Assembly: GCA_964019335.1 (NCBI GenBank)
Contig: OZ025651.1
Location: forward strand, 248,001 to 312,000
Origin: Diplonema japonicum
Taxonomy: Eukaryota; Protista; Euglenozoa: Diplonemea
Length of the DNA stretch: 64,000 nucleotides
Direction: 5' to 3'
This document shows, in pieces, positions 1 through 38,311 of this stretch. The translations under genes were made by a program, and so were the position numbers. The first letter of the stretch is position 1; every line of letters starts with the position of its first letter. The notes beneath the pieces were generated by a model, which was not told the DNA's origin, did not search any database, and saw only the letters and a program-made list of their open reading frames with translations.

Positions 1-3000
1 AACGATGCCCCCACAACACAGTTGAAGGAGTCCATGAACGGAAGTGTGCCTCTCGCGCTCTGTGAACCGACCCCTAGGTTGTTCCCATCTATATCTAAAT
101 GCGGTCCTGCACAGGACGGAAGCTTCCTGTCAAGGTCAACAAGTTGCAAACCGTACTCTCGCGGCCTTGGAGAATTCAGGTAAAAGGACACCGTGCCCAC
201 ACCGTCTACCATAGTCACTATGTTGCCACCCACGAACTCAACACACTCACTTGTGCCGTCGCAATTTCCATGCCGTAAGCATAGGCCATTGACACAATCA
301 GCTGTGTCCCAAGCGGTTGTCGTTTCTTGTCCCTCGACAAACACCTGCACGCGTCTAGTCTCCTTGTCGCCTGTGGTTACATCGTTCCCGACGAAGTCCT
401 TTGTTGCGATTGTGATGTTGTATGGCCCAACTCTTCTGGAGGCCTTCCTCTGCTTTGCTAAAGCTGTTAAACCGAGCATAGCCTCAGAAACGCCAAGCTG
501 CGCTGGATCACCGATCTTTATGGGCCCCTTCATGCTACGTGCAGACGCCAAGCCTGATGTGCAGTCGGTTGCACTGATACAGGATGTTGACAGCTTGAAT
601 GTCGTGCGGCTGGGCGATTTGAGGATGTCCACCACGCTGGCTGCCAAGGTAGTCGCCTGCCGTCCTTGAGCCCCCGCACTGCAGGGTGTGCCATCAGTCT
701 TGAAGCCTGTTTTGCAGCACTGCACACGGTCTTCTGGTGTGAATTCCAATACTGAGAAGAGATTGATACAGTGGTACTCACACAAGGGCTGCATGGATGT
801 GATCGTACACGGGTCGCGCAGTTCGGCGCTTACGTCACAAGTTGTGTTCGTCTGGTTGACATGAAGAATGTACGACAGCCGTAGCTTCTCGTCGCCGTCG
901 TTGTTGACAGCAAAGCTAAAGAAGTCGCCGTACACAAAGAAGGGGTACCCATAGTCATCGGGCACAGCAGCATTGGACCTCACTCTCAGAGGGCTGTACT
1001 CACAGGGGCCTCCTGTGCATCCCTGGATGCATTTTGAGGTGGTAATATTTTCGGGCAAGCTCAGTGGTGGTATGTCATACCCGTACTGGGTCAGTGTGTC
1101 GCCATAGAACTCCCACGTCACGTTGTACTCCACATCTTCCTGAGCCCAGATGGACATTAGGCTGCCAGTGTTCCCCGGCACTCCGTATCCAGCCTCGCCC
1201 TGGTCGTTGAATGTCGGGTCGAAAATTCTGCGCAGAGTTGTTGCCTCCTGCGACATGTCGGACAAGGGAGGTGTGTTCCACCCACACAGTCCTTGCTGTG
1301 TACGGTCCTCAACACCCCACATGCCTAGGTCGCCTGGCTGTGGCTGCGAACACAGTCCTGCACTGTCGTCACTGCATTCAGGTCTGCATCGCGGCCAGGG
1401 GACAATCTCTTTCACTCTCACGAAAGTCGGGTTCTGTGCCGTGAACGTAGATACTATGTTCTCAGCAACGTCGAGCAGCACAAAACGCGGCTGTTTAGTG
1501 AGCTGCTTGTCGTTCGTGAGCGTGCTTGTCGGTATCAACTCGGGGTCAGCGAAACCCGCGTGATGGGGCAGCCCCTCTAGCACGGTGATGATCATCTCTG
1601 TAAACGCAATGCTTGGGTTCTCAGCCGTGACGCGAAGCAAGTATGTGCCCTTCGCAGGAGCCCTCATCCTTATAAGGGGATACTTCCCCATTGAGGACTT
1701 TAGACGGAGCAGTCTTGCTGTCTGCGCGATGGTCCCGTCCACTTCCACAACAGGAACGGCAGTATCGTATTTGATGGAAGCCAGCTGGCCTTTGCTTGAC
1801 GCTGTCGTGTTGAGGGGATGCACCGCGAGAGCGACGTTTATCTCATCCTCGACCCCGCTATAGTCTTCTCTTGTGTTGTAGTTGTAAAGAACGTCCTGGC
1901 CTGCGATCCATGCGCCGCCCCAGTTTAGCAACCCTTCGCTGTCATCAAGCACACCTATCGTGAGCTCATAGGTTTGCTCCTGTGCCGCCAGCCACCTTGT
2001 AATTGAGCCGTGCTGCCATTCGCCTGCTTCTGTCCAGAATTGCCCTCCTGCAAGGGTTACCCATTCAGATGCACGAATAACTGACTCTTCATTCATGAGC
2101 ACGTCGGTCAGTTGCAACAACCTGTAATTAAACTCCTCGTGCTGCAGCTGATCGTTGACGTAGTCGCCCGACTTTAGCTGCCTGATGCCCAACGCGTGGG
2201 AGTAGTTGAAGGGCAGTGCCTGTGCAAACCTGTACTGGTACTCCAATGATTTGTCATACGACGAGTCATCTTTGCTGAAGTCCGGCAGCTGTATCTCGGT
2301 GTTCCACATTCCTAACTGCATGCCTCTCCCCACGTACCTTTGGTAGTAGTTGCCCTTGATGTGCGACTCGTTAAAAGTAATCACATTTTCACAGGTCTCC
2401 CGCTGCTGAGGACACCTTGGCCCCAATACATCATTGCAGCACAACCCAGGGCTAACCTTGCTCATCCTTGGCACGCTGCGGAACTCACTCGGAAGCGGGT
2501 CGCAGCGGAGCGTGCAGCTATCGACAAATGTGGCGGGCACCTGTACGGCAAACGAGTCGTTCACAGCATGCCTGAACGTGCACTTATACTGCCCCACCTC
2601 ATGGAATGGTCTGGTGAGGTTCGTGAACGCCCATCCTTTGATCGTTATGGGAACCTCAGAGCCGATGGGGAGCTCCTCTGGCTCGACCCATGCCAGTAGC
2701 TTGTTTCCAACATAGTTGAAAGAACAATCCACCATATGCAGCTGTGATGTAAGGGACATTGGCGCGGCAAGCGGTGCCGACCTTCTCACCACTTCGAACT
2801 TCAGTTTGAAATACACTTCCCGCAAGGTATTTGGAGTAACAGAGGTGTCAACCTCGTACTGCAGGTCCCTACCAGTTCGGCCTGTGGACATGATGCTCAA
2901 CTGCTCGAAGGCATAACTAAAGTCTTCCTGCACTTCTGCGATTGCACTGGTTACGGCTAAAGTGGGCAGGCCTGACACTGCATCTAGCAAATAGCCATCG

Positions 3001-6000
3001 ATGTCATCCAGCGACGCCCTGATGTACAAGTCACTGCCTTCACCGACAACCTTGTTTCCTGCCACGTCCACGATCTTGAACGTAGGCTGTTGCGTGAGGG
3101 GGTCTCTGTTGTTGGAAAACAGCGGCGGTTCCGTCTCAAAGACAAGAGCGTGCGGTGTACCTCCAACCACCGTAAGGTCGATTGCGGTGCTTAGACCTCG
3201 CGGTGGGTATGTCAAAATAACTTTATAAGCACCCTCGGTCGGCCGCCTGACGTACAAACTATTCATGGCAGCAACGCCGCCAATTACTGGTACCTCAGTA
3301 GCACCTTCCAAGCCAAGCTCCGAGGTGGCGATGACAGAGCCCTGCGTGCTGTCAATCCACACATCGCCCAGCACCGTCCCCAACGCATCCTTAAAGATCG
3401 CTGTGATGTTCAATGGGTTTACTTCGGAGCTTCTGATCGTGATGCTGCGGCTCGACTCGCACGCTCCGCTTGAGCACACTGAACTGAAGACCACCATACT
3501 GCTAGGTGCACCTACGGCTGTGTAGTTCACGCCAGATGGAGAGTACAACTGCCCGTCCAGCGTCACCTCCAAGTAACCACTAAAAGGTGTGATCGAGACA
3601 GGCTGCAGACACAAAGCCTTCATAGTCGTCACAACCGTGCCTGGTACAGTGACTCCATTGACACGGCAGCTCATGGTGTCAGTGGCAAGGAAGTCGGACC
3701 CGGATACGGTGATGAGCACATCTTGATTTATGGGACCGAAGGTACCAAAGGCAGCTCTTTGCTGCTGCACCACTGCACCATCAACAATGTCCAGGTATGT
3801 TGCAGGGCCGGGGACTTTGAGCCCATCCAGAGGGACATGCACCGCCCAGTTGCCCGATGTATTGTATGTCCCCAAAGCATGGACGGTAGGACGTGTGATG
3901 TGTCTTGTTGCGAATGAGTTCTCCGTCCACCTGTCGTCGGGGCCGATGGACACCTCCAGGGGTAGCCACTGGCATGACGAGTACTGATCCGGTTTATTCG
4001 CGAAGCACGTGATCTCAACAGCAAGGCTTGTTACTGTTTGAGTGCAGCTGGAGATTACATCACCAATTCGCATTCTATGAGCATACAAATAGCGGGGAAG
4101 CCCCACACCTGTGATAGTTACTTCTGTCATGCCGGGTTCGCCTGCATCGATCACAGTCGGCGAAGCGTACAGCACGTCGTACATGTTGAACACAGAGAGT
4201 AGCAGGGCCTCGGTGTTGATAGACACGGTGAAGAGCGCCCTGCGCAGTAGGTCGGGGTGCATCGCCACGAGGGTTTCATCCCTTTCCAAAGCACGTGTGT
4301 AGTTTGTTGTCAACGACACAACATTGATTTTTGTGATGATTGACCACCTGTTGAGTGCCTCCCCCGTCGCCACATAGGCAAACTCCGTGTCGTGATCCAC
4401 CGTAGCGCTTGTGATGCCGTAGTCGCCCTTGAAGTTTGCTATGGTCCAGCGGATGAATACACACACACCGTTTTCCCACATGCACTGCGCATCCAAGCAT
4501 GCCTGCTTGTCAGTAATGCCAGTTGTCTCCAACTCGTCAACAGGCTGGGCTTTAATATTGCCTGTTCCCATCTTATATAGCACGTATCTTGCGGTGTCCC
4601 CGTCGGGACTGGTGCGGATGAGCAGTAGCACCACGTCTTTGTGTAGGCCGCGCTGATTCGTTTCAAGTATCTTTTCGATCTGTGTACATTTCACTGCATA
4701 GCAGATCTTCATTGCTAAAGGCTGCGTGTAGGTCATCACATGTGTCGGCAAAAATACAGTTTGCACAACGGGTAGCTCGTTGACCTCTCCGAACAACAGA
4801 GCGTACGGCGTCCCATCATCCACATTAACGTACATGGATGAGATAACAGACAAAGCAGGGTTGAATGACGCAAGCTCCAACTCTTGCGTGTCAACAACAC
4901 CGTGGAAAAGCGCCAAACGCCTCAAAACATATCTCACAGGCATGAGCACGCCGTCTTCCCCACGTCGGGATTCCAGTAGCACGGCAACGAAGTCGTAGGC
5001 AAGTCCCTCGTGAGGGTAGTACGCATGTGCGATCACCTTGTACTCATTGTTGGTTCCAGTCAGCATTATCACAGCTCTCTCCGGTTTCAGTTCTTTCAGA
5101 TCAACCCACAACCCACTGCAACCAGCAGCGCATTCTGTCCCGGTGCACAGCCTGCCATCACTTACCTCAATGCAAGCCCTCCCCGCCTGTATGCCGCGTA
5201 CAATACCATTGATACCATTATAAGTGACCTCAGTACCAGCAGGGCAGCCGCCAAACTTCTGTGCCACTGTCTGGTTTGTGCAGTCGCATTCAGTGTCCAG
5301 AGTATACCCCGGAATGCCTTGCATCCCCGGGAACAATGGTACTTTACCACCCACGTGAACCCTTGCGACGTAAGGTTGTGCGGCGTTCACCACCACGTAC
5401 ACGTAATTAAGGATGTGTAAGAGACCCAACACATTGCTACCAAACACTTCGCCATCGGCGTTGGTGATGTGTGCAGACCACTCAATGTTGGGAGTGCCCC
5501 CGAAGTTCACGGACTCTGTCGTACTTTTAGACCAGACGTTTACTACTAAGCTATTCGTGGTTGTACGGCCAGCTGCTGCGAACATATACTCCACATCGGT
5601 GCCTTTCACATGGAGCACAGCCCCTGTGATGCTCTTAATGTTCGTGTGTTCTTTTCTGATTGTGATTGGTCTAGACACCTGGGGCCCACCCCCAGCTACC
5701 GCGGGGTAGCATGTGGCGCCCGTGTAGCCTTCAGCACAATCATCACACCTCTCACCGCCATAATGCCCTCGCACGTCATCACTGTAACACTGACACACAC
5801 CCGTCATCTGTTCGCAGACGCCTCGTAAGTTGCATCGACACTCTTCTGTGCACTTCTCTCCCCAGTACATACCGCTACACGTAGTGCAGTTCGTTGCGGG
5901 GTCCCAGTGTCCCTGTACACCGTTGTCGGCACATCTGCAAGGGGCGCTCGGGTTGTTGATGAACACCTGACAGCTGCCCCTACCGTGACAGTCAACTTCC

Positions 6001-30000: not shown

Positions 30001-33000
30001 AAATTCGTCACTTCAACAAAATTGAACTGCATGGTTACAAAGGTGCTCGTGTCCACAAGATACGCAGATGACCCGTCGACCAAGCTGGGAGCAAGGGTGT
30101 GCGAGGCGCTTGATGTCTGCATCGTGCTGATGTGCTTTGCTGCGTACGCGTTGTCGGCAAATGGTGAGGCGTCGCCGTCGAAGTTAATTGTGAAGACACC
30201 TTCGTCAAGCACCGAGTTGTCGAAGGAGTACACAAAGTCCTCCAAGTATGCAGTGGCCGACACCTCGTCAATGGTTATCGATGTGACTCCCGACGAGGCG
30301 ATGCCTTCCTTCACGAAAGTGTAGCAGAACACGCTGCCGCACGGAGCCGCCAGAGTAAGCGTCTCCGTTGAGCTCCCCGAACTGCCAGATAGCGTTACAC
30401 TCAAAGTGCTGCCAGAAGTTCCAGAGATGACTGTCATCCTAAAATTTGTGACCTTTTCCGTACCGAAGCTCAGGGCATGGGGAACGGAGGCACTGAGACG
30501 CCAGACGGTCGTTCCTGATAAAGGCGATGTCTCAACAACCCTTGGAGAAAAGCTGTAGATGCGGAAAGGGAGCAAGTCAGTCGGGGATAACGTTGGGCCA
30601 GAGACAACGCTTGCGATGTCAAGCACTTGCTTACTGTTGCCCACTTCCCCCCCTTGGTAGCTGTACCGAATATCGTCCACGATTAAGGTCTCTGTGCAGG
30701 AAAAGAGGATCTCGTCGAACGTTTGGCTGGTTTCCTCGAACTGCGTACAGAAAAACGCACCACCGCAGGAAGTAGTGAAAGACAAAGCAATGGTATCCAC
30801 GTCGACACCCTTCAGTCTAAGCTTCACAGTCGCTATAGCAGCACTGGATTTTGTAGCCAGCATGACAGCCACTCTTGCAGCCTGGAACATGAACCGCACT
30901 GCCGATGGCGAATCCACCTTCCATCCGTTTGTGTTGTCGTAGTTCGAAACAACTGACTCGGCCCCCACACCTACGATTATGTAGTCCTTTACATAGTCTC
31001 CGTGCTTGAAGGAACCAGTTGATGAGTCAAAGTTCACCTCCTTGCGGAGCGGCAGCACTGCGCTATCAAACGAAAAGGACGCAAACTCCAGCATTAAGGT
31101 CTCGCCCTCGTTATTGAACTCGAAACTATTGAAGGGTGTTGATACCACCACCGAGGCACAGAACAGGGACCCGCAAGGGTCGGACAGTGTCACAGTGTGC
31201 AATTGGGTCGTCTTTTGCAAAATCGATACCACACCAAAAGAACGGGAAGTTGGCGACGACAGCACAAAAAACCCATGCTGTGCTGGCTTTTCATCTGTAA
31301 GCTTCGTGGCGGCTGCGCCACCCACCAAAATTGCTCCACCAAGGAATCCTGTCTGTATCTGTGTGTTCCCCGTCTCCAGCACTTCAAGCGGGGGGAACGC
31401 GTACTTCTCCAGGGCGGCCCCAGGTGTCTTATCAATGAAACTAACTGTTTGGTCGCCTTTCTCTTCTTCCGTAGTGCTGACGAAAGAGTAGTAGAGAGTA
31501 GACAGCGAAACAGTACTGGGAGGGAAGGCCTCTATATCGTATTGGCGGTGCCCGTCAGAGGATGATGATGTGTACTCAGCACAAGAAGTAGTGTCGGTGC
31601 AGATTTTAAAGTCGAGTGAGGTGGCCACGCCAGAAGAATCCCGAACGACGACCTTGACATCGTTGGGCACACCCGCAGACTCCGAGATGAAGTGCACCCA
31701 AAATCGAATCTCCTTGACGGGGAGATGGAAACCGAGTGTGCCTGCGCCTGTTATGTCCCATCTGTTGCTGCTAGCTGCGAAGTTGCTTGTGAAGAGCTCC
31801 AAGTGTTGATGGTAGTGCTGACGTTCTAAAACCTCATCGCCCCACGGTGCGACAAAGGCGTCCGTCGGGAATACACTGTCGCCTGTCAAGGAATGCGAGA
31901 TCTCCCTCACGAAAAATGGGTTGGTGGTGGTGGAGACGAAGCTCACCAGCATGACTGGCGTCCCTTCCTCGCGAACAAAGGTTCCACAGTAGACAGTGGC
32001 GCATCGCGTGCCGATGTATACGAAAGTGACGGTTTTAGAGCCGTCTTCGTAATGCTGGGTCACCTTGATGTCCTGAATGGTGGCACTTCTGAATTTAATC
32101 ATCAGATTTGTGGCAGGCAACCATTTTTCGAACCTGAATTTCCCCTCTGCATTGTTAATGACCCACGACTTGCTGTTCTCCGTAGCAGGTGAGATTTCGA
32201 ACACCCCATCGCTTTCGAAGTCGCCGCTGCCGATCGCCTCCAGAGCCTCGAACGTGGCCCTCTTTATCCCCAAGGGGGCAACGTTCCCCCCAGGTGCAAA
32301 CGTGTGCATTATCCTTTCAACTTGAACCTCGACATCCCCAGTAAAGGTCAGCGATTTGACATTTTCAAACGACGCTGATCGGCAGAACCCGCTCTCAGAG
32401 ATACACGGCAATGTAGTTCTGTACGAAACCGCACTGCCACCGTTAATCGAAAATTGCACCTCTGCAGGGACGCTGCTGTATAGAATCAGAACAACCGAGG
32501 CAGACATGTCGGGAAAGCTGATAATCTGCTCGATGCCTGGGCCGACGGGCCATGCGGTAATCCCGCCGGGTCGGGATATTTGAGGGACAGGAGAGGCAAG
32601 AATGTGGTCGGAGGTACCAAAGTGGTCCATATATTTGTTGAGGAAGCCGTCACTGTTCACAGGCGATACGAAGTCAGACTCGTAGATGTCCAACGGCACA
32701 ACGTCCGAGTCGTCGAAGGAGTATGACACTTCAGACAAGCGCATACATCCTGTCGTGTCAGGATCGATCTTGATTTCGTCGATGGCCGCAGTGATTACGG
32801 TCTCGACTACAAAACGTCCGAAATGAGATGCAATGCGTGACGCCACTGCGGTGGTGGACCCCACGACAGCAGAATTAAGACGGTATTCAAGCGGTGCTTT
32901 GCATCCATTTGTGTCGGACGAAAACAGCAGCCTTATTTTCGTCAGGTCGAAGGGGAACCGCATTGTCATTTCATTCGTGACGACGATACCCAGCACGTTG

Positions 33001-34640
33001 TTCCATGTGGTGTCGTCGACATTGTTCACCCCGTTCGGCAAGCCCAGTTGGGACTGGAAGTTCTTCCAGAACAGATCAACATTAATGGGGCTCCCTAAGA
33101 CAAGGGAATCAAACCGAACCAGTTGGTACTTCGGCAAGGTGCTCTCTCCTGTGAACGAGTACGCGTATGAAGTGAAGTATCCTGCAGTATCCCAGTCGAA
33201 AAAGTCCGCTGTACCTTGATAGTGCACCACCAGGCACCTGTAGAGCGATGCTGTTGAGACGCATGGATTGGTGCTTAATGTCACTGTCAGTGTATCCATC
33301 AGCACACCCAAGTGGAAGAAGTTGAAGACAACATCAGACGTCACTGTGGTCTCCACAAAGAACGTGAACCTAATGCTCGTGACGGGCCACACAAAAGCGG
33401 TACGCCCGCTGCTGACCTTCAGCATGTTAACCGGAAGAGACGACCCTGTCCCTTTGTCGGTAACCAGTTTAACATCGGTTAAAACAATATCAGACTGCCC
33501 CGTGAAGATGTGTTCGATGCCGTACAGTTGGTACAGCTCGTTGCTGTAGGTGAAAGGAAAAGGAGAAGCTGAGAAGTCTAAGGTGATGATGCCTTTTTTG
33601 ATGGTTGTCTCCGTGCTGGACGGCGTGCCCTCGAACCCCCGGTACAGGGAGGGCTGGTTTTCCTCGTATTGCCTGTACGCAATGTGCGTGAGCTCCACCT
33701 CGGTCGGGTTTGAGTTCCGAGCGAATGTGACATGCCTGGCACCCTTCACAACAGACGGCATGACGTAGTTGGCGCACCGACACGCATTTTGCAAATCGAC
33801 ATAAGAGATATAAATTTCTGTCATGGAACTATCATAATAGGTTATGACGAAGTCGGTGTTGGAGGGTGAGGCACGAACGCGCATCCGCAAGGTTTGAAGC
33901 ACTTGTTCAAAACGGATACCGTCGAGAGTCCAGTACTCCGACGAGGGCGGCTTAAGCACGAGATGCAGTTCGTCGTAAGGCAGATTAAAGAGAGTCGGGT
34001 ATGTTGGAGGAGCAAGGCCTGCGATGTTAAGCACCGAATCATTTGGATACAGATACCTAAGACCCTTGTCTAAAAAGGCTATGTGCGACGAAGGTGCCAA
34101 TCCTTTCAAACCGGCGAGAACAAGTCCGTCATCCACACCATCATGAGAGTAGTACTGCTGGGTATCGGAATAGGTGAAGACGAATGTTTCCACAAACACC
34201 TTCTCAGAGGATGTAAAGATTAACCCACGGAAGGGTATCCCATTGAACTTAACGACACCACACAATAGCAGTGGGTCCTCGGGGCACGGGTCGTCCAGGT
34301 TAAGGGTGTACTTGTGGTGGGTCTCATAGTTCCCTGAGAGGGTGAAATGTATCGCTGTAGGAGTTGTCGCCTGGACGCCGAGAACCATTTCGAAGCCTAT
34401 CACATCTATCCCGTAGGATATCGCGCCTGTTACCCCGCTCACTGACCAGGCTCCACGCCGGTACTGATCTATACTCTCGATCACATTGGGGTTCAGGAAC
34501 GAGACGCCGTTACCAAGAACCTCAAACACACTTGTCCTCCCAGCAAAGTCTATCCGCCTCCCAGGCGAGAATGCCGGATCTACACCCAATGGCAACACCG
34601 AGAGCACCAAGAACAACCATAACAACCCTCTCACGTTCAT
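1..34640 (-). CDS. Giant (at least 11,546 aa; 3' end beyond window) secreted/surface multidomain protein: signal peptide, ~30 beta-sandwich-like repeats, mucin-like stalk, laminin-EGF/Cys-rich modules
   Basis: ATG at 34640 reads MNVRGLLWLFLVLSVLPLGVDPAFSPGRRIDFAGRTSVFEVLGNG (signal peptide); in-frame TGA 5 codons upstream; pyrimidine tract + CACAG acceptor at ~34679. The same frame translates cleanly wherever checked by hand (30180-30340, 14340-14520, 9540-9900, 6240-6300, and 3-59 = SARGTLPFMDSFNCVVGAS). No minus ORF checked in the track for 1-34640 uses this frame, as expected if it has no stop before the window edge. Confidence 0.92.
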   Translation of the reverse strand, partial: MNVRGLLWLFLVLSVLPLGVDPAFSPGRRIDFAGRTSVFEVLGNGVSFLNPNVIESIDQYRRGAWSVSGVTGAISYGIDVIGFEMVLGVQATTPTAIHFTLSGNYETHHKYTLNLDDPCPEDPLLLCGVVKFNGIPFRGLIFTSSEKVFVETFVFTYSDTQQYYSHDGVDDGLVLAGLKGLAPSSHIAFLDKGLRYLYPNDSVLNIAGLAPPTYPTLFNLPYDELHLVLKPPSSEYWTLDGIRFEQVLQTLRMRVRASPSNTDFVITYYDSSMTEIYISYVDLQNACRCANYVMPSVVKGARHVTFARNSNPTEVELTHIAYRQYEENQPSLYRGFEGTPSSTETTIKKGIITLDFSASPFPFTYSNELYQLYGIEHIFTGQSDIVLTDVKLVTDKGTGSSLPVNMLKVSSGRTAFVWPVTSIRFTFFVETTVTSDVVFNFFHLGVLMDTLTVTLSTNPCVSTASLYRCLVVHYQGTADFFDWDTAGYFTSYAYSFTGESTLPKYQLVRFDSLVLGSPINVDLFWKNFQSQLGLPNGVNNVDDTTWNNVLGIVVTNEMTMRFPFDLTKIRLLFSSDTNGCKAPLEYRLNSAVVGSTTAVASRIASHFGRFVVETVITAAIDEIKIDPDTTGCMRLSEVSYSFDDSDVVPLDIYESDFVSPVNSDGFLNKYMDHFGTSDHILASPVPQISRPGGITAWPVGPGIEQIISFPDMSASVVLILYSSVPAEVQFSINGGSAVSYRTTLPCISESGFCRSASFENVKSLTFTGDVEVQVERIMHTFAPGGNVAPLGIKRATFEALEAIGSGDFESDGVFEISPATENSKSWVINNAEGKFRFEKWLPATNLMIKFRSATIQDIKVTQHYEDGSKTVTFVYIGTRCATVYCGTFVREEGTPVMLVSFVSTTTNPFFVREISHSLTGDSVFPTDAFVAPWGDEVLERQHYHQHLELFTSNFAASSNRWDITGAGTLGFHLPVKEIRFWVHFISESAGVPNDVKVVVRDSSGVATSLDFKICTDTTSCAEYTSSSSDGHRQYDIEAFPPSTVSLSTLYYSFVSTTEEEKGDQTVSFIDKTPGAALEKYAFPPLEVLETGNTQIQTGFLGGAILVGGAAATKLTDEKPAQHGFFVLSSPTSRSFGVVSILQKTTQLHTVTLSDPCGSLFCASVVVSTPFNSFEFNNEGETLMLEFASFSFDSAVLPLRKEVNFDSSTGSFKHGDYVKDYIIVGVGAESVVSNYDNTNGWKVDSPSAVRFMFQAARVAVMLATKSSAAIATVKLRLKGVDVDTIALSFTTSCGGAFFCTQFEETSQTFDEILFSCTETLIVDDIRYSYQGGEVGNSKQVLDIASVVSGPTLSPTDLLPFRIYSFSPRVVETSPLSGTTVWRLSASVPHALSFGTEKVTNFRMTVISGTSGSTLSVTLSGSSGSSTETLTLAAPCGSVFCYTFVKEGIASSGVTSITIDEVSATAYLEDFVYSFDNSVLDEGVFTINFDGDASPFADNAYAAKHISTMQTSSASHTLAPSLVDGSSAYLVDTSTFVTMQFNFVEVTNFRMLVMVDTAGDISVTITFKRHGKVVSTQVVPFSSVSKITAVTASGFDEVQVDGVGPGVLLDDISFSFDKTHVVPTGQQVLQLDEDEFAEDALINKWISSVTPIRSVGAFDAGFGMRPLQFAVAPQKACLKFRFTEVTGLSVVFVTAAASTASDINIEVLGRGVVVGTVVARETSGIACGTAQFCLTYVSTHAGVDEMCITSTTNPYSLFDITYSFDGTPVPFAGVFKIDPADILPYATTTVPENAFMEKHLFSMSPFRSTASDFLNGQSIVLEQNVLKFDAKLTSIQMMVQAVFVEPVYFEAACGFKAESTAFVEYEMSEKCEQIVANAYCYVLTFSDCDTVSFKLSTPSLLLHRLRYSFDSSPPYSDEYHFDFEDISTAVLFPKEIIKLSGTLSAGDVIDRKAAEGAVEITSMVVPWQRMRLLVIGGAGTAITVNQFTRDLTMTNQHTLDAQTAGAFKCGPTLALDCNILHMTGPTAVLTATSNFQFWTDDFGYSFDSNVDLLGSGVRVLTFEDSDFFTNLANYHISKATPLSSVVTGAGYDSSNWWRCMGQCELDFEFHTVGRFVITVRANAPITLNATRLHFGRETTTQYEVGANCEGASDRCMSFALSDPFDSITLVTSDVAHFDVDNVRYSFTTSATHVDPFPSGVFRFEFDTAFESRDFATSHWVSKIGDGSESVSLIHLDSGWLLQTGATKEVIFTYFTVTRLHAVIVASQPGVSVGVKVFRKGVITTVIVNCDAEYATGFYYGRIYEENFEMLSLVASGGTPTMTEMRWAYDDSFLFPEGIQVLNLGSIPSTTTFKAQEVSIISPAAVSSNTPSGSGWDVKSGTNSSLFFNMIPVTSLRFSVVTAMVEDVNCYMFKEGIMVGSSLAKVTQECESYYCAEHVTSVSGFDFIACEPAADAVVTHVRFSYDGTPVAPAGLVNVDFNQFETMIDYGVLATYFVDSVVPDTVGFTDPLNTIVVGTPSTVSFSNLQVTAVKVDVGTSRGLDPQVAHLELLFRGTSVTNISYTSFVPCGNDFNTGDICVSLLISTGYIFDAVQVYIDSGYLISVAYSIDGTSLLPSGIQYVDLETYPNEYDSIPQLIYRVQGTDTTSPPRPGKVVCAPSGTCKPLVLSTKFIPAQRLKMTFYVPFFGLTLHVHMFKNLTTAFAGTVKIDDLYPCAVSGSCQQIEFEQEFDAVLLTLFLLVEEGAESEGTPFFSGNMFDFLLAFDDTAIYPAGLIVIDFEDVVGNAFESNSYVGKNAVFGANGVTAAHYDSANAVVLSMAQSLSVQFVISTNGGTRYLPHVVKGCRATISSTVLTTASVLLKTSSNTVSSYNVDVMTQCDAASSRFCGTFIAASTFDEVAFSSSDDILVDDLKFSFDDTLKVPFAYILTFDSGTTFSHNAYIDSHFISSLGHGTQTLVDCFAGKAWRVPEAVSTKIIFSYMRFDITVAICAEVPGTTISYIATAGGEGTPPLGTSLTLDYHSGYYCTHLAEKGVEVLTITATGSDVLVLRVMTSVEGTAFPHGKQVLDFAAVSGTFSTNTFSPQLVYLTGPTVMTTDTYDGVNGWVLSEGLEQGISFLFAPIATTMRMVFSGSISCDVVVTFKSLGADESTATVNVNQACGASGTLFCGELVVASTKAEFVVFSATKDTALHTFWWTFDNSNIVPTAGVHTRDFAAFGSGTLTFSNDDVPNAAVSGNRDLGTSFDGSTRTWEVSGEHIIKFDVPATNFMINIAINSASDAVVSFTRSRWLFSSPQEDIVMNVACQSSRRCNSYTFNGPVDELRFDSTFGMFIFTMSYSFDGTVVVPTGRLSITWPAVSGTFTATQYQSSHMFAVSATAHDVVGYQGSAVFPMKVQSDVGSGAITADFQTYFLTMTDVRIVLSSTNLCSALDVSSTSSDAVISSAKLTLENAEDCGTASKCAVVTLQKLSQITVAPDAAHFPTPSCEISGHLFTVTLDHMLYTFDETTILPSGTFWLTFDSLSSSFDCSMFIEASHVKLVGACLVGTSFDSSEAWNTDTSTPAVDFAVITNGGSTTVKLEVRYLRMTFITASEQTFIVTYKKRMAEVGKHTVTTNQPCGSMYCALLVSAEIALDEAVMPDSVEFIDDLMYSFDTSMPLPVLLITPPLEPNPVGTVMGTDVYRKYYVNTIGTHTYGEFFDGQMCVEVAAGGTFTMNYSFITATDTIMVVCASQAGVSVVVTTDQAEETVDLLADYPAGYHCNVVQTKNVVSTNIAVKDSSTEALKIHGLSYSFDNTPTMVQGNVNPDFSPYPSSFEGATFFDKRTYFSLTTTSTSSYDGTAGWLVGADATMLTYYFATESSGATFTAEITADSGTAVKVTVSTKKAGAAMSSEELQIDEPCGVNKMCKTLLVWNGFDAMFLSPEVPVVVSHMFYAFHAEATVVPSGEVIVNSFPEGAPYSSGAFPVYTSISYVTPSNTIGANFMGDLGIQLGHVTGSESVTLRFGGEGISYKATNLAVRFSSLGTVPHTFTYATTLRGFAKGSGSVSLAVACPGSTTHMCGYLVLANDKFDEIQFTGNGQEVVLYGIQMSFDGTAVPAGKFYEELTTGEIDNIDYVQILNGKMDDPRGVGVETDVTVQFFYPVSSLTFITTANCDTKISVTKYLAGVEVGTEQINSLPNAEWTTGGGFDTLVLHKPTWIPTYAFSEAWFRFDGGAIKQTGVQAATFDYSPPSADFPRAYYSDIGLMAVNVVDRKTFAGAWTLRAGQVATLTFAHKVKAARIVAFSSMLATTVTLTALFAKSSVWTRSFAMDQQCFPLSESKFHCIQMSAFDFNELTIQSDLRDIDIDHLEFTFDEGLHAGPMTVKFNETGQGLSKNTYSPYLQVTGSSHTLANSFISDNAAWEVPTTGSLSYDYLVAMNIAVSLVSTTAGASVKLTFLNYGGTEVVKTVSLDEQCGEGHFCKVVSADDEHLNLAIEAQSGTVMVDQFVWSFDGSSTVPRGIFELPFSSVGWLSSDFYSTHYVDYIGPNTDSADASAGEWLLKEGTAQRVQFGGITVTGFAADFKCAAGCRVVVTFHTGGTTIHTEEVVTQACGSEHCGTIVNFLHPFNTVAFDRTAETGVMRVTSLRYAYDGSTVGAPGGLNSIGFTSDAEGVTTFYAGDYVQQFIGSRQIGPDGTGAAAVQNCGSQMLDFVFQFDVKEMSFDVYVTAGAGKYIDVLLRDKDNTLLDDSSFGVPFTRYLDLDELVMVLTYVLPSGPTPRRLSVVSYGDVSGAFNMDYLEYSFVSGTVTPSHPSGRQKTSFEGVAVGTLSHISLQPSSIRYVKNAVLDADGTFHNNAILVPENGLFLSFGPLVATGASLVISGTYPANITVVTYDGFENTVAGEYLMTDVDFCPGSSRKCLQVTLVGVRSFSVFNNHSDAPCFLEELAFCFDHCEISPTPTLTETVTLPTPTETFTESLTLPTPTETATLTETMSISLTVPTPTASETASLTVPTPTESASESFTLPTPTESATASITIPTPTESATVTFTVPTPTASETVSLTLPTPTASASISFTVPTPTASETVSLTLPTPTASASISFTVPTPTASETVSLTLPTPTASASVSFTVPTPTESLTTTFTLRTPTETDTATLSTSVSLTVRTLTESSSVTFTVPTPTESATVSLTVPTPTETASETATIPTPTESATVSLTVRTPTETASETATIPTPTESATVSLTVRTPTETASETITIPTPTESATVSITPPTPTETFTESLTLPTPTETATLTKTMSISLTVPTPTASETASLTVPTPTESASESFTLPTPTESATASITIPTPTESATVTFTVPTPTASETVSLTLPTPTASASISFTVPTPTASETVSLTLPTPTASASISFTVPTPTASETVSLTLPTPTESASESLTFPTPTESATTTFTIPTPTETKTATLSTSVSLTVRTLTESSSVTFTVPTPTESATTSATLPTPTVTATVTMTPPTPTESATTSLTFPTPTASETHTLSATNSFTIPTLTESATVSLTVPTVTESATVSPSIPTPSASSTVSLTLRTTTITSTASFTVPTPTESATASATLGTPTASHTTTVSGSLTIRTETVSHTLPTHTFSETITVPTPSDTVTLRTPTATTTGSETLSLTASLTGSPTVTLLTPTDTLMTITGTIGGTTTPTLSDTSSPSVSLTAPTATESVTVSLTLPTSTNTATKTPDTSTITFPTPTATVSLNAYEACNWRGLINTLPACQDFVDSYDSNCCSSTLSECTGTVQLLSIDYMYALCPSECKKKGHHCPPAYPEARIIVQGANKTSEVVTMSRNFDDARLQLLYRSEELLEAGLVQHNEILGLGFDSYDGLVNTYEVRIGWTTERELTGPIEGDWKSSVKQGAYVFNGWTPLPLLGAGIRWDGESSLVVETCLTGQAETHPDLTMNVTTTPFDSVAYNYHNSLCEDDCTVWCTAAGVEAGVARVRPLLMLTIQDSDFEICNLEEIIAEDCATYVQQNPAQCCAKTVDSTLDACVGPIPKPFDSTTPVFFLCPAECISAGLSCETPCDPRYPKAGDYGLTCTSLGVDPVTIECSRPPCIDYVCQDDHRCVGVMQELCGRDLDLSLLGIVPAQWHEFPVGSNASGMCPVKCNACPTDCTYFSAMCGTAACFDTGPIDGVYVCGCRCATEPDDGRPVCDDRNQRCWDLARQGWCNYLPFENGTCVTANDPEWAGPFNHGGRCMCSNDVDIIIGECSAETGRCRISPDPMPTQAPLPDPLYDGDLHVGSFIGYGVCLDSRSRMFDAFVLNVADEAACRSATVKMGREQCGVVGLEYTTGACRVLTINVSTSEQTVELRGAGSPNPATANGVEGTICLNYFKGPCSSADNCSGCAFATIGTTIKTLDTACSVENDVCMLGGDNCTSSCVPVDYISVCDSETWYSEGNQRYDYVFMTDQHTCEEAGYATITDAADCGRALCQAANIQWLSSTFENNVLTPAGCSAACGTEDSCVFSTACLTTSSGASCITSAETGTRCICKRDRGPVVKTTQTCPTSSVVFVLQESGSCGQTVNSPIYVAGELPANAFDNIPYYFIEDITDEATCRAAACNLLGWSVADGNLGSYGGYPVVSDLGKALPYTGEQESMWQGGCSAEVDAKNLWFMRQDTCPGATSQQSCLALSGCVWENAACSSSRTPQTKCSKASPCLCKKKDDVRVDLVVGIRFDVLQSFFDTMLASPTAAGVTALNNVINSLKALFESVGLSQMVLNAYKIWKMCWRNARSSPLTACRYYQEILETSLLDITSLRRTARTLSDPQGYMLTEARFELDFVPATDAKATLDKSLREIEGTFVGGILVDVVEYIKLVGVGIAVPDFVCSITSNGPTCPQPVDFHDSGAFTTCDPCAKLPCTGDYDTDSQLTQWCNTETRTLEPYETYRNDYMAYATVGDGQEPLPGPTTLRVAKTLLAGSARMGIMVGGAANMDIYADSTVTQYHFRSPYEDSAADEVAILNACGPFSVMVTAGAQQSNLSLQVCYPRKQCFDSCSGPAQDGKVYGRCVLAIPWVPGVDGNPSVPSMKCVCNVNHGSVINGELTCTECAPGRFPRPAQGTSEPCTRQCVVSEAGIAQGVYDPVVDKCLCFGGWSGDLCEDCNPDLHMYGPYCNESQAAVVFSFSTTLTEADPVFRPPPWKVMGPSNINVTIKNSSEIELMTMTATEGHVTSVEVDTTTKASTGVIDAAYYGTAPADIPATCAGNPGETLLHLFIGDMVHVYRYENSFEKVCQEEIAVYYDSCALESCASSFGTDYDRDYDAVIYLVLNDVQWILFVKGDKICTATDIDSKLTFSDSFSSDISNMFGMPSVPGRELVNILHAGYGELCAANLGVAERSCLETGTWDAIITIDDDIVFIKDTEVRVWANTSDYCCVNGERCTCGDNILSALNKEYPQPYEYPPGTVVPDSWKVLHMNSIVSTKKHDEFFSISPPLPIVGAAAAKGYPTILFSEYLMLYNNKMRLISDVFDLNMPSSLRVESEQDERKVPTSNKDVLAYTLTVRDKNGRVTALNNDKIYAVLQRCGRPMTPEELAAVSVLQPSASVNLTEYVWDTSDCVDEESTQILGNRLMTVTESAVEFGLSGLGISNSGWFRLKFIHVKSMLETYSSAVQVITSDCSTGSHKECWVVCTPPQCSIPISANKEWVQLYIKTKSRSVVGLQIQIVQPCCNGRGLCCAGQNSCTEHSAVDFTGYDLTETRCDCYEDFQNGFWDQRTHSNCSFCKTGYEGDNCATFSGPRTTASQDSSLALGRNQFYVYRTQAETLFDATLLSQNGDADMYISFLPCPGQNAGGHLKKGEVAHVCSGRGECMLLEDGTTQCTCDRGYTGVDCSKQCCGGRGECSGEDTCETCFADEDLGNWDHTNTECDGGYCDGTPGVNVYPSTECMFANDEGVLTACKTVPAFGGSSAPMRVWLQWQEVKAPGAIYYSALRLTLGKAAACVGQRVVVYATQPNNVPLMWNATEWPEGVVPCGVYSPYPDRVCGSNAQYNASVKQCVCDTGLTCLRGICSVPDSISCVDGICHQLQKKNDEVDKTVCEGFVCVAHLHNLEYTWNSSLAGTVNDLWQHEELQWIGYNASSRFYGEVGSYTHFVSKEGEIMDIDITYWMQLYVSRHAHEYADLSFVIVTEGDISCQPNYTKAEFVLKKEANHAPGMLFVTVEDSELSAKQGGQPYLRMMTSETMNVEDDSYFMYRYVTNESRYGECGNGTCECNNLQEATYQDATDFVQVGDLMYFLATTDWEAQYGDSAPCGTVWGEAGEVYQGAREIMYSIGLPTEVVEGSVAHNHTYAKYKHGRNTYPDFDASQTELRNQLLGMRVFTMAKDLLKMPSNKPGYNKEMLVFCGVANGGTPVVTIPNADQQPQIRSTLAPQLWRYLLTPGFGEFGATPVGPPELIALNVIFPFYPTYVDLAGESLLLLLGEENLYRFEDQQYAPSDIGYGGEKAPYMHPIPTMLGVWVATGDPSKAVQIAMPAVTPLPAKCEHVQSHPGFTVFNGHVYFYYDNGTGMKLWRWNRRMTQAEIVHIKHEGTVLIPSIPPLNRGYFKPAVVDNHILLSLGKPDGNVRSSGDCLASPCARKGHTYQNTFKCVNKNRGHVGLWSWDGTNEPIRVDTGNAKHADPKWLTPAETGVFFVMHVGGLTNLGVHLTTDDTTRYPQFSKEEKEVLVFVSTSEGLLQKQWEMDVAGAYGFTEWKSKLLYWGYNTTQVNDGYNDVGSCYPPGRLQDIATGDLVTKVMTGINVPAYDGCNRILYSVGSSPAVFEEPVPLFKGGSEDGAGVPNKHCCSEGTFTLSEPETLPSLAGSMCNASDPGCVTDTNGAVHLPRGCLKCSLKSSDPDEFIYPTTNHPDARQYSLNSEWDQPRNGWWFAGYHSLWLDKRSSTASGEVKGTHMKGSEMYRMGGFAWRESWPRVIGVMTGIIDPVRKKCEDCSPGYYSPGCNLQCPVPSGAYCGGLSTDSCMRDIACEVVMGSCVPLPCSGLPCFDGIRGNGTCNCGEGRSGLYCEEPSTAKSKTVYTVTGDATASSVECDGACGPAANQCTQDCTGSYNDAEPCCGRSPAPYYVSTTNVAVFSWLDIVYPPTENGVQSAFFTVYQSSSSCTDPAVLQLYDLSTETAWLHHNGHDWVEASLTSDKIDAMGFTEGNLKHTLPIQSTVLGKETVFDLASFLQEKWGTSPGVRNLTIGLKLDSDSCRPAFLPREYHSEWGDICRETGCVTLGAAVPGYKISTNSAYSPMLEIVSATSEAATNAQSSTQLVIEGSKGAFAGLQDLPTLFTTDALTQFEEHQACDRISTDALETCRLMTPLNTAFAVVRVLAFTHADYSLTVAYTETGRFQNPSFGDCIRSEVKGHWSGTFCLDCHFRYNGSICEEYLDECSPATCDPSQGTCVPDPDTDNTLLMCKCNPEFHGRDCTKKCECEHGECSEDGTCTCHKTEVLGFWSGETCNDCAKDFWGNECLRKCSCLYGVCNRLTGNCQPDTCTGNWVGDDCSLCKDGYFGTLCIHSCADCVLGNGVCEGGACHCDTSNNWHAAVTGCILCDAEVDCHGRGSCQVFINNPSAPCRCADNGVQGHWDPATNCTTCSGMYWGEKCTEECRCNLRGVCEQMTGVCQCYSDDVRGHYGGERCDDCAEGYTGATCYPAVAGGGPQVSRPITIRKEHTNIKSITGAVLHVKGTDVEYMFAAAGRTTTNSLVVNVWSKSTTESVNFGGTPNIEWSAHITNADGEVFGSNVLGLLHILNYVYVVVNAAQPYVARVHVGGKVPLFPGMQGIPGYTLDTECDCTNQTVAQKFGGCPAGTEVTYNGINGIVRGIQAGRACIEVSDGRLCTGTECAAGCSGLWVDLKELKPERAVIMLTGTNNEYKVIAHAYYPHEGLAYDFVAVLLESRRGEDGVLMPVRYVLRRLALFHGVVDTQELELASFNPALSVISSMYVNVDDGTPYALLFGEVNELPVVQTVFLPTHVMTYTQPLAMKICYAVKCTQIEKILETNQRGLHKDVVLLLIRTSPDGDTARYVLYKMGTGNIKAQPVDELETTGITDKQACLDAQCMWENGVCVFIRWTIANFKGDYGITSATVDHDTEFAYVATGEALNRWSIITKINVVSLTTNYTRALERDETLVAMHPDLLRRALFTVSINTEALLLSVFNMYDVLYASPTVIDAGEPGMTEVTITGVGLPRYLYAHRMRIGDVISSCTQTVTSLAVEITCFANKPDQYSSCQWLPLEVSIGPDDRWTENSFATRHITRPTVHALGTYNTSGNWAVHVPLDGLKVPGPATYLDIVDGAVVQQQRAAFGTFGPINQDVLITVSGSDFLATDTMSCRVNGVTVPGTVVTTMKALCLQPVSITPFSGYLEVTLDGQLYSPSGVNYTAVGAPSSMVVFSSVCSSGACESSRSITIRSSEVNPLNITAIFKDALGTVLGDVWIDSTQGSVIATSELGLEGATEVPVIGGVAAMNSLYVRRPTEGAYKVILTYPPRGLSTAIDLTVVGGTPHALVFETEPPLFSNNRDPLTQQPTFKIVDVAGNKVVGEGSDLYIRASLDDIDGYLLDAVSGLPTLAVTSAIAEVQEDFSYAFEQLSIMSTGRTGRDLQYEVDTSVTPNTLREVYFKLKFEVVRRSAPLAAPMSLTSQLHMVDCSFNYVGNKLLAWVEPEELPIGSEVPITIKGWAFTNLTRPFHEVGQYKCTFRHAVNDSFAVQVPATFVDSCTLRCDPLPSEFRSVPRMSKVSPGLCCNDVLGPRCPQQRETCENVITFNESHIKGNYYQRYVGRGMQLGMWNTEIQLPDFSKDDSSYDKSLEYQYRFAQALPFNYSHALGIRQLKSGDYVNDQLQHEEFNYRLLQLTDVLMNEESVIRASEWVTLAGGQFWTEAGEWQHGSITRWLAAQEQTYELTIGVLDDSEGLLNWGGAWIAGQDVLYNYNTREDYSGVEDEINVALAVHPLNTTASSKGQLASIKYDTAVPVVEVDGTIAQTARLLRLKSSMGKYPLIRMRAPAKGTYLLRVTAENPSIAFTEMIITVLEGLPHHAGFADPELIPTSTLTNDKQLTKQPRFVLLDVAENIVSTFTAQNPTFVRVKEIVPWPRCRPECSDDSAGLCSQPQPGDLGMWGVEDRTQQGLCGWNTPPLSDMSQEATTLRRIFDPTFNDQGEAGYGVPGNTGSLMSIWAQEDVEYNVTWEFYGDTLTQYGYDIPPLSLPENITTSKCIQGCTGGPCEYSPLRVRSNAAVPDDYGYPFFVYGDFFSFAVNNDGDEKLRLSYILHVNQTNTTCDVSAELRDPCTITSMQPLCEYHCINLFSVLEFTPEDRVQCCKTGFKTDGTPCSAGAQGRQATTLAASVVDILKSPSRTTFKLSTSCISATDCTSGLASARSMKGPIKIGDPAQLGVSEAMLGLTALAKQRKASRRVGPYNITIATKDFVGNDVTTGDKETRRVQVFVEGQETTTAWDTADCVNGLCLRHGNCDGTSECVEFVGGNIVTMVDGVGTVSFYLNSPRPREYGLQLVDLDRKLPSCAGPHLDIDGNNLGVGSQSARGTLPFMDSFNCVVGAS
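5700..6600 (-). other. Laminin-type EGF / MEGF-like cysteine-rich cluster in the giant protein (similar clusters ~7560-7850, ~10900-11600, ~13270-13640)
   Basis: Translation SGETCNDCAKDFWGNECLRKCSCLYGVCNRLTGNCQPDTCTGNWVGDDCSLCKDGYFGTLC matches CxxG[FY]xGxxC EGF-laminin spacing. Confidence 0.8.
17490..19850 (-). repeat. Mucin-like Thr/Ser/Pro tandem repeat, 39-nt / 13-aa unit (e.g. PTPTESATTSLTF)
   Basis: Minus-frame translation gives PTPT(E/A)S-x-T-x-T-(L/F)-T repeats; near-exact 78-nt doublets and a ~620-bp block duplicated at an 894-bp offset (aaggtttctgtcggtgtggg at 18901 and 19795). Confidence 0.92.
20200..34400 (-). repeat. Array of ~30 divergent ~140-150-aa extracellular repeats within the giant protein
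   Basis: Recurring [YF]-[ST]-[FY]-D motif about every 430 nt (YSFDD ~32715, YSFDN ~30225, YSFDG ~29360 and ~24630, YTFDE ~24140, YSFDT ~23700, YSFDN ~23280) and recurring CGxxFC-type pairs (PCGSVFC ~30340, PCGSLFC ~31170, ACGTAQFC ~29460, QCGEGHFC ~21290). Repeat count is an estimate. Confidence 0.7.
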
Positions 34641-34678: not shown

Positions 34679-34790
34679 CTGTGAAGAATGTTTAGAGGGC
34701 ACGAAGAAGAAGAAAAAAAGAAACTTGAAATGAAGATAAGGAGGGGGGGGAGGGAGTTATAAGTAGAGTACGTAGTCCATTTTGTCAATG
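34679..34790 (-). promoter_or_regulatory. Pyrimidine tract + AG, putative trans-splice acceptor of the giant gene
   Basis: Minus strand TTTCTTTTTTTCTTCTTCTTC...CTTCACAG ends ~40 nt upstream of the ATG; a similar arrangement precedes most genes in the window. Confidence 0.55.
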
Positions 34791-38161: not shown

Positions 38162-38311
38162 ACTGTGTTGGCATTCAAAAAAGAGGAGGGTAACACAGGG
38201 CGAGATAAGGTTACAGAGCAATGAGAAAAAAAACTAAAGGGCGGGGGGTGGGGGGTAACGAACTTAAACTACACTTTAAAACTGAGAAGCACACTGCACA
38301 CTGTCTGCTGT

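Follow-up and report, generated by a model that had tools for sequence, protein, structure and literature searches.

A 13,084-residue protein of Diplonema japonicum with a predicted jelly-roll array, a mucin-like stalk and a distant PF06011-type membrane domain

In a window of 64,000 nt from the genome of Diplonema japonicum (contig C4, G000:C4:248001-312000; assembly of 62.5 Mb in 132 contigs), one minus-strand reading frame stays open from an ATG at position 34640 to the window edge. The question raised by this locus is whether a frame of that size encodes a single protein, and what such a protein would do for the cell. The frame was found to belong to a gene, referred to below as the giant gene, with a spliced coding sequence of 13,084 amino acids (aa), and its product, the giant, combines a predicted jelly-roll array at the N-terminus with a mucin-like stalk, a Cys-rich core and a polytopic membrane domain. 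On balance, we regard the giant as probably a surface receptor-adhesin that binds glycans or particles; it may also couple their binding to a Ca2+-linked response.

Reverse-complement translation of window positions 1-34640 gave 11,546 minus-strand codons with zero stops (first residues MNVRGLLWLFLVLSVLPLG), in agreement with the earlier note, which had proposed a hidden single frame here, while the second-longest open run, taken over all frames in the window, had 1,495 codons. From the base counts of the window, a stop would be expected about every 23 codons, and by this arithmetic the chance of the giant frame is roughly 10^-235. An in-frame stop is located five codons upstream of the ATG. 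Adjacent DNA (C4:218001-248000) was then added, for which local coordinates (L002; L002 8824 = C4:246824) are used where convenient. Across the joined sequence the frame remained open for 11,947 codons without an in-frame stop, and the first one was reached at C4:246797-246799, 1,203 nt past the window start. This apparent stop (L002 8797-8799) is intronic. Transcript contigs were compared over L002:4801-10000 (the 3' 5.2 kb, comprising the end of the frame and 4 kb downstream), and one 4,299-nt transcript-type contig from one run spans L002 5090-9634 minus seven short gaps, all of which are GTATG...(C/A)AG introns of 31-42 nt on the minus strand; the stop lies in the first of them (L002 8786-8823). 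The other three runs compared over this stretch gave unspliced contigs that were identical to the assembly. Removal of the seven introns preserves the frame and gives a coding sequence that ends with a stop at L002 5139-5141. Because the apparent stop sits inside the first intron, the protein has 13,084 aa and not 11,947, with a calculated mass of 1.42 MDa and an acidic isoelectric point (pI 4.8). The size proposed earlier (at least 11,500 aa and >1.2 MDa) thus holds, but the proposal that the gene is intronless had to be given up, even though the 35,817-nt exon 1 is itself uninterrupted. The gene is laid out as follows:

Window 34679..34760, minus strand: candidate spliced-leader acceptor, a pyrimidine-rich tract with a plausible acceptor AG at 34680-34679, 38 nt upstream of the ATG.
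Window 1..34640 (codons 1-11,546) and on to C4:246824 (L002 8824), minus strand: exon 1, 35,817 nt or 11,939 codons, uninterrupted.
L002 8711-8785, 8599-8679, 7918-8556, 7410-7880, 7296-7376, 7093-7264 and 5142-7057, minus strand, outside the window: exons 2-8, from the spliced contig.

All seven introns fall within 1.8 kb after exon 1, and all seven junctions are conserved and free of gaps in P0020, an mRNA-derived open reading frame (ORF) of D. ambulator. They match the published intron type of D. japonicum, in which the median length is 41 nt, the 5' splice site reads (G)/GTATG and the 3' tract is rich in A (PMC12621601). Further in-frame introns hidden within exon 1 were considered and rejected: among 24 GTATG sites there were eight candidates with a length that is a multiple of three, at five positions, and these five positions are coding because all of them aligned to residues of the D. 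ambulator orthologue. The joined spliced protein was used for the frame check, for hydropathy and for comparison with fetched proteins, and database searches were run exon by exon. According to the genome note for D. japonicum YPF1604, the assembly is not yet annotated (PMC13598402).

Within the protein, the earlier note had read a signal peptide followed by ~4,800 aa of beta-rich repeats, a ~790-aa mucin stalk and more than 5,800 aa of Cys-rich, EGF and Ig-like modules. Each of these parts was recovered, as a hydrophobic N-terminus with ~145-aa repeats at aa 37-4934, a Ser/Thr/Pro-rich stalk at aa ~4930-5720, and a remainder with EGF-dense patches and a TIG domain. The corresponding window features are:

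34569..34640, minus strand: predicted signal peptide, aa 1-24 (MNVRGLLWLFLVLSVLPLGVDPAF), from hydropathy (a Kyte-Doolittle peak of 1.99 at aa 6-24, preceded by a basic n-region).
19839..34532, minus strand: ~34 tandem predicted jelly-roll modules of ~145 aa, aa 37-4934, from an iterated hidden Markov model (HMM), profile tiling and AlphaFold2.
17481..19838, minus strand: mucin-like stalk, aa ~4935-5720, with 13/26-aa repeats of the PTPTESATVSLTV type, from composition, self-matches and DNA periods.
1..17474, minus strand: Cys-rich core, window part aa 5723-11546; it continues outside the window to aa ~11890.
11103..11192, minus strand: EGF-like module, aa 7817-7846 (Pfam EGF_Teneurin E 7.5e-4 and EGF E 2.8e-3, both below their gathering scores).
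5694..6596, minus strand: densest Cys zone, a candidate EGF/laminin-type array, aa 9349-9649 (Cys density of at least 6 per 40 aa; internal repeats at aa 9344-9648).
3519..3743, minus strand: predicted IPT/TIG domain, aa 10300-10374 (Pfam PF01833, E 1.7e-4, 22.0 bits; gathering score 20.9).

The head array was resolved by an iterated profile into 28 repeats with a period of ~145 aa, and tiling with a full-unit profile gave 30 significant and 4 degenerate units with no linkers between them. The units share a P-x-G motif, a Trp, a C(G)xxxxC loop and YSFD. Identity among them is 13-22%, whereas the array as a whole aligned position by position with its D. ambulator counterpart at 31-32% identity, from which it follows that the units are old and have been constrained individually. 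AlphaFold2, run on the unit alignment, returned an all-beta model with a predicted local distance difference test score (pLDDT) of 87.2 and a predicted template modelling score (pTM) of 0.82. This model produced 111 Foldseek matches in the PDB at E<=1e-3, led by the carbohydrate-binding module (CBM) family CBM6 (E 2e-5), and VIA-align placed it at Z 9-11 to CBM22/29/61/8, putative CBMs and binary-toxin receptor-binding domains (9.6-10.3 for CBM29, CBM22, CBM61 and CBM8) and at Z 8-9 to reelin sub-repeats and MAM domains. As modelled, the head unit is therefore described here as a galactose-binding-domain-like jelly roll of the CBM6/22/29 type. CBM6/22/29/61, the toxin domains, reelin, MAM and the ephrin-receptor ligand-binding domain (LBD) all consist of a jelly roll of ~130-150 aa like that of the giant (Foldseek E 2e-5 to 4e-4; VIA-align Z 8-11, root-mean-square deviation 2.5-4.6 over 115-136 residues); the giant differs from CBM-like jelly rolls in having no detectable sequence relation to them, motifs of its own and 34 linker-free tandem copies. 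Pfam contained no family that matched at E<=0.01 across the whole array, and the unit profile had no relative among PDB sequences. The units would thus be CBM-like in fold only, and by sequence they fall into no defined CBM family. Searched against this genome, the unit profile matched the giant gene alone, and against 1.84 billion representative proteins it found seven matches, including D. ambulator and F. neradi (Flectonema neradi), the three named ones being diplonemid. On the strength of the model and these searches, the ~145-aa jelly-roll unit is a new, confidently folded domain family that is so far confined to diplonemids.

The array is followed by the stalk, in which aa 5001-5500 contain 33% Thr and 15% Ser (48% Ser+Thr), 13-14% Pro and no Cys. 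Self-matches within the stalk reached E 1e-77, its DNA repeats have periods of 39 and 78 nt with 57-97% match, and a spike in GC skew lies over it at 18-20 kb. These long Thr/Ser/Pro tandem repeats without Cys are what defines a mucin-type domain, to which the stalk can be assigned by composition, and it is predicted to be O-glycosylated. Behind it, the core of ~6,100 aa has 309 Cys in aa 5750-11890 and almost no internal repeats, and Pfam returned EGF (sub-threshold) and TIG alone. Homologues added some support for both: the D. ambulator orthologue has a precomputed PF23106 match; in homologue P0022 the aligned part matched EGF_TEN at E 7e-7, below the gathering score of that family; and the same homologue has three TIG stretches (E 1.6e-13), with PF01833 precomputed on P0021, P0023 and P0024. 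In a phmmer search against PDB sequences, neither aa 5801-10000 nor aa 10548-11939 had an informative match, and all scores of an Atlas search with core aa 8001-9000 were <0.8. An identity as laminin was considered and rejected, as Pfam found EGF-type and TIG domains alone and no laminin N-terminal, laminin B or laminin G domain.

Translation into the adjacent DNA also revealed a transmembrane (TM) helix at aa 11,894-11,912 (TM1, a strong hydropathy peak), as expected from the membrane anchor that had been predicted beyond the window. Its form is another matter: instead of a simple tail, we found a predicted nine-helix domain of the PF06011 type with a B-box-like insert and an EF-hand. A further helix lies at aa 11,986-12,004, and the C-terminal block contains six modelled helices (aa ~12,668-12,874), four of them with clear hydropathy peaks. 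An insert of ~650 aa that carries the B-box-like finger divides the helices into a group of three and a group of six, and a tail of ~190 aa follows the EF-hand. If VSALAGDF..ALF, an amphipathic segment, is taken as helix 2, which we infer, the sequence is consistent with nine helices in an N-out/C-in topology, with the loops rich in Cys on the outside of the cell and the B-box and EF-hand on the cytosolic side. The family PF06011 ('TRP-like', Flc/Pkd2 type) matched 11 of 21 aligned genomic paralogues at E<=0.01 (best 1.1e-7) as well as homologue P0022 (E 7.8e-5), several of the 21 matched EF-hand families, and the best Atlas cluster for the membrane domain was a PF06011 family (0.90, with 213/256 features shared). 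At least 25 loci of this genome have a PF06011-type membrane domain. The AlphaFold model of the domain has a pLDDT of 85.7. Overall, the giant appears to carry a distant PF06011-type membrane domain, a designation that makes no claim to a TRP-channel fold. Directly after the last helix, the loop DKDGDTQVTFDE has the canonical 12-residue pattern of a Ca2+-binding EF-hand; it is kept in D. ambulator (DKDGDGSVSMEE) and in paralogues, and the EF-hand of the membrane-domain profile matched calmodulin and other calcium-binding proteins at E 9e-9 to 1e-6, with the calmodulins at E 1e-7 to 1e-8, although Pfam EF-hand_1 stayed below its cut-off on the single giant sequence. The B-box-like Cys/His pattern CGLCHKDFAVWFCPHHDEFYCERCDKVLH is likewise kept in D. 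ambulator.

The core and membrane domain together form a chassis that recurs elsewhere in this genome. Four close paralogue frames, with 31-59% identity to the giant in the core, were found at C7:19109-42589 (6,755 codons, 50-59% identity), C1:1065845-1087260 (6,956 codons), C66:204645-242747 (12,749 codons) and C54:6591-26415 (6,307 codons). The N-terminus of the C7 paralogue (C7:38003-42589, minus strand) comprises a signal peptide, one Laminin_G_3/ConA-like lectin domain (E 3.9e-24) and a mucin stalk of ~500 aa of the TFSLTLPT type. Since this head and the 34-module array sit on the same core, the conserved chassis carries different lectin-type heads, which suggests that heads are exchangeable on a conserved core and membrane part. 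In the C66 paralogue the membrane domain is located within the 12,749-codon ectodomain frame and the N-terminal half of ~4,000 aa is different, while the giant has its seven micro-introns between TM1 and the last exon. With the giant and these close paralogues included, at least ten frames of more than 6,000 codons share a module (12,749, 11,951 for the giant from stop to stop, 10,627, 8,691, 7,409, 7,190, 6,956, 6,755, 6,628 and 6,307 codons); the others among them lie at C60:~252917, C57:~129842, C14:~87403-98830, C36:~475061-485284 and C44:~536316-541564. Judged by these frames, the genome is unusually rich in megadalton genes of surface type.

Outside this genome, the chassis was detected in P. 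papillatum (KAJ9454236.1), in Sulcionema specki and in the prokinetoplastid Papus ankaliazontas (EukProt EP00760; P0022/P0025), whose protein of ~5,000 aa has three TIG domains, a teneurin-type EGF below the gathering score and a PF06011-type domain. Over 252 aa, the Papus membrane domain has 49% identity. The chassis thus probably arose before the diplonemids did, and may predate the split between diplonemids and kinetoplastids. These diplonemid and prokinetoplastid sister giants share the core, the B-box-like finger, the PF06011-type domain and the EF-hand at 31-61% identity, and TRINITY_DN742_c2_g1 of D. ambulator, which has the same jelly-roll array, is the probable orthologue. Proteins of D. 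ambulator, a different species of the group, are the nearest in the databases, at 32-61% identity. 'Laminin subunit alpha, partial', the name given to the P. papillatum relative, derives from EGF-type similarity only, and this protein was not mentioned in the text supplements of the P. papillatum subcellular proteome paper. In our literature search, giant diplonemid proteins were not described, and the relatives in databases were unnamed transcript ORFs or mislabelled.

Three known systems are helpful for reading this architecture. Fungal PF06011 proteins (Pkd2 of S. pombe, Flc1-3 of S. cerevisiae) have a signal peptide, an extracellular N-domain, about nine helices and a cytosolic tail. The giant shares this architecture, with a sequence relation that is weak but repeated across paralogues, and differs from the fungal proteins in an ectodomain of 11,870 aa instead of a few hundred, the B-box insert of ~650 aa and the fused EF-hand. 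Polycystin-1, PKDREJ and sea-urchin REJ proteins place a very large adhesive ectodomain with lectin-type and Ig-like domains on a polytopic channel-related domain, and in polycystin-2 an EF-hand follows the channel. Here the common design would be one of analogy, not homology; Pfam found no PKD, REJ, GPS, PLAT or PKD_channel domain in the pieces of the giant. Bacterial repeat adhesins (MpIBP of Marinomonas, SiiE of Salmonella, LapA of Pseudomonas) are megadalton proteins in which tandem beta-sandwich modules hold sugar-binding modules off the surface. The giant differs from them in being eukaryotic, in its signal peptide and polytopic anchor in place of type-1 secretion, and in its mucin stalk, EGF/TIG core and cytosolic domains.

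The explanation that we consider probable is therefore outlined as follows. The giant would sit in the cell membrane, with its nine-helix PF06011-type domain in the bilayer, and the core of ~6,100 aa and the O-glycosylated stalk of ~790 aa would hold the array of ~34 modules far from the surface. The array would bind extracellular ligands multivalently, the likeliest being polysaccharides of prey, of substrate or of particles that are algal or detrital in origin. Glycans are favoured as ligands because of the jelly-roll fold, the lectin head of a paralogue and the polysaccharide-centred membrane biology of diplonemids, whose cell membranes expose many carbohydrate-degrading enzymes (PMC12697944) and whose genomes encode large repertoires of CBMs and carbohydrate-active enzymes (PMC10161547). 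Ligand binding or pulling would then be coupled to a Ca2+-linked response through the EF-hand and the B-box-like finger, in the manner of polycystin-1/2. This coupling, drawn by analogy, is the weakest step of the mechanism, and channel activity is only hypothesised. The earlier reading as an adhesin-like, coat or prey-capture filament stands as far as an adhesin-like surface protein of the secretory pathway is concerned, but the nine-helix domain with its B-box-like insert and EF-hand speaks for a receptor and against a passive filament.

Several observations weigh against the receptor-adhesin. The jelly-roll match is generic: TM-scores among the matches listed are 0.36-0.52, identity is <20%, and the Z of 9-11 compares with a background of 7-8. 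The same fold serves protein-binding modules (the ephrin-receptor LBD, MAM, reelin), so that glycan binding is a guess. On the giant itself, PF06011 reached 19.6-21.4 bits (E 1.3e-4 to 4.6e-4) where its gathering score is 28.5, and ANCHR-like_BBOX reached E 9e-4 with 19.7 bits against a cut-off of 27. Foldseek and a wide VIA-align search with the membrane model recovered generic helical hairpins and no solved channel fold. About 5,500 aa of the core are without an assigned fold, and the surface location is predicted from the signal peptide, the mucin stalk, the Cys and EGF content and the topology.

An alternative explanation is that the giant is structural, with an ectodomain that contributes to a glycocalyx, or to a layer resembling extracellular matrix, and so serves to protect the cell, to shape it or to let it glide, and with a membrane domain that is a mere anchor without specific capture or signalling. 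Matrix and coat proteins do have mucin stalks, many EGF-type Cys modules and TIG domains; the name of the P. papillatum relative, the missing channel fold and the many giant surface-type ORFs of the genome would also fit. However, that name goes back to EGF similarity and the giant lacks the laminin domains, the conserved nine-helix domain with EF-hand and B-box-like finger exceeds what an anchor needs, the heads of the paralogues are lectin-type (Laminin_G_3, CBM-like), and the individual conservation of the 34 units between species argues for specific binding surfaces and against filler. We consider a purely structural role rather unlikely, although it is the strongest competitor of the receptor-adhesin.

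The receptor-adhesin can be taken one speculative step further, to a 'fishing-line' sensor, which we put forward as a long shot by analogy. Its 34 distinct lectin-like modules, carried on a stalk of mucin and EGF parts that is perhaps hundreds of nm long, would catch algal or bacterial polysaccharide, and pull or occupancy would gate a Ca2+-permeable channel of the Flc/Pkd2 type, tuned by the EF-hand and a cytosolic partner of the B-box, thereby triggering attachment and feeding. If true, a polycystin-like system for mechano- and glycan-sensing would have arisen independently in Euglenozoa, and the interchangeable heads over at least five paralogues would be a recognition repertoire for prey and particles.

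Whether the giant gene yields one protein was assessed from transcript contigs and from other species. It is expressed, at least over the 3' 4.5 kb. For the 5' 4.3 kb, 100% of the words that were sampled occur in the contigs of five runs, which come from two studies, and 43% occur in those of the run with the spliced contig. Transcript ORFs of D. ambulator and Flectonema neradi together tile aa 294-13,076 with the order unchanged. Among them, D. ambulator P0008 accounts for aa 294-4731; a single F. neradi ORF (P0004) covers aa 4441-4927 and 5718-8420, bridging array, stalk and core; and D. ambulator P0026 and P0020 cover aa 6635-13,076, where P0020 aligned to aa 7319-13,076 in one match of 5,807 columns at 61% identity. 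All D. ambulator ORFs belong to the one Trinity gene named above. Taken together, a single full-length mRNA of ~39 kb is strongly suggested. Against it weighs that the transcript contigs were compared over the last 5.2 kb of 39.5 kb and that the ends of a transcript are not visible in contigs; the mRNA may also exist in shorter isoforms, or the protein may be processed by proteolysis.

The locus could in principle give rise to several products, either as shorter mRNAs made by internal trans-splicing and polyadenylation, or as a precursor cut into a shed array with mucin and a membrane receptor. Trans-splicing does mature euglenozoan genes, and the limited stretch over which the contigs were examined leaves room for it. 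In addition, the spliced run is fragmented, with two contigs across the 5.2 kb and the 43% of 5' words given above, and in the Trinity isoforms of D. ambulator the gene is divided between two ORFs, p1 and p2. Fragmentation is, however, expected when a 39-kb transcript of low depth is assembled from short reads, and the D. ambulator fragments overlap colinearly within one Trinity gene, while in F. neradi one ORF links the last jelly-roll units, the stalk and the core. The 35.8 kb contain no stop, and no internal signal peptide or TM helix is present that would make downstream pieces secretable, as aa 25-11890 show weak hydropathy peaks only. A motif search of the ectodomain found 0 occurrences of the cleavage motifs R-x-K/R-R (furin type) and R-x-A-x-V-L-Q/A, and 0 of RGD. 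Several products are accordingly an improbable alternative to the single giant. An artefact, either a mis-assembly joining unrelated genes or a decaying pseudogene that stays open by chance, is scarcely credible: although a mucin stalk and tandem modules are classic sites of assembly errors and the repeat number of the stalk could be wrong, a frame this long cannot arise by chance, the five runs with all 5' words and the three that agree with the assembly over the 3' 5.2 kb without a difference support the sequence, the likely source assembly was built from 102x HiFi reads and Hi-C (PMC13598402), the order of head, stalk, core and membrane domain recurs in other species, and tandem units that are 13-22% identical are too divergent for collapse.

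As design principles, both tandem CBM-like arrays and giant adhesive receptors that sit on channel-related domains are known already; what is new is the family of the jelly-roll unit. Diplonemids are among the most abundant heterotroph and predator groups of the ocean, and they appear to invest in megadalton surface proteins. By joining a lectin-like array to a channel-related module with predicted Ca2+-binding and zinc-finger domains, the giant offers a testable candidate for the recognition of particles or prey and a candidate companion of the carbohydrate-degrading enzymes recently found on the diplonemid cell membrane. The paralogues extend this to a modular scheme in which a conserved chassis would carry an exchangeable head. 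For annotation, the gene is a warning, with a 35.8-kb exon that is followed by introns of 31-42 nt, one of them hiding an apparent stop, and with relatives that are fragmented or mislabelled as 'laminin'.

The genes around the giant were recorded as well. In the window from 34700 to 64000, every long ORF upstream of the giant is on the minus strand, fitting a unidirectional gene cluster. Neighbouring features, by position relative to the giant, are:

Window 35663-38221, minus strand, upstream: adenylate/guanylate cyclase.
Window 49133-51280, minus strand, upstream: DMFA2_C-like protein.
Window 51999-53057, minus strand, upstream: nucleotide-sugar transporter.
Window 54955-59352, minus strand, upstream: HEATR5/Laa1-like protein.
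L002:2707-3462 and L002:626-1393 (C4:240707-241462 and 238626-239393), minus strand, 2-4 kb downstream: two tandem ORFs of 252 and 256 aa.

Two genes upstream of the giant, an ORF of 1,142 aa (window 40777-44205, minus strand) gave a weak match to Laminin_G_3 (E 4e-5, below the cut-off), and it coincides with the most pronounced GC-skew spike in the window (+0.34, at 42-44 kb), as the stalk of the giant coincides with another. It may be another surface protein with a lectin head and a mucin part. On the downstream side, the stretch just after the stop of the giant gene (L002 4801-5089, C4:242801-243089) is T-rich simple sequence that translates to FFFFFF runs, and the contigs of four runs all end at L002 5090. 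Farther along, the tandem ORFs of 252 and 256 aa have near-identical starts (..KKKKMLACLTMAVAMGS..) and ends (..YAGRNRRDSGLNSSIIRP..), each preceded by an A-rich run, and would by this resemblance be a recently duplicated small gene.

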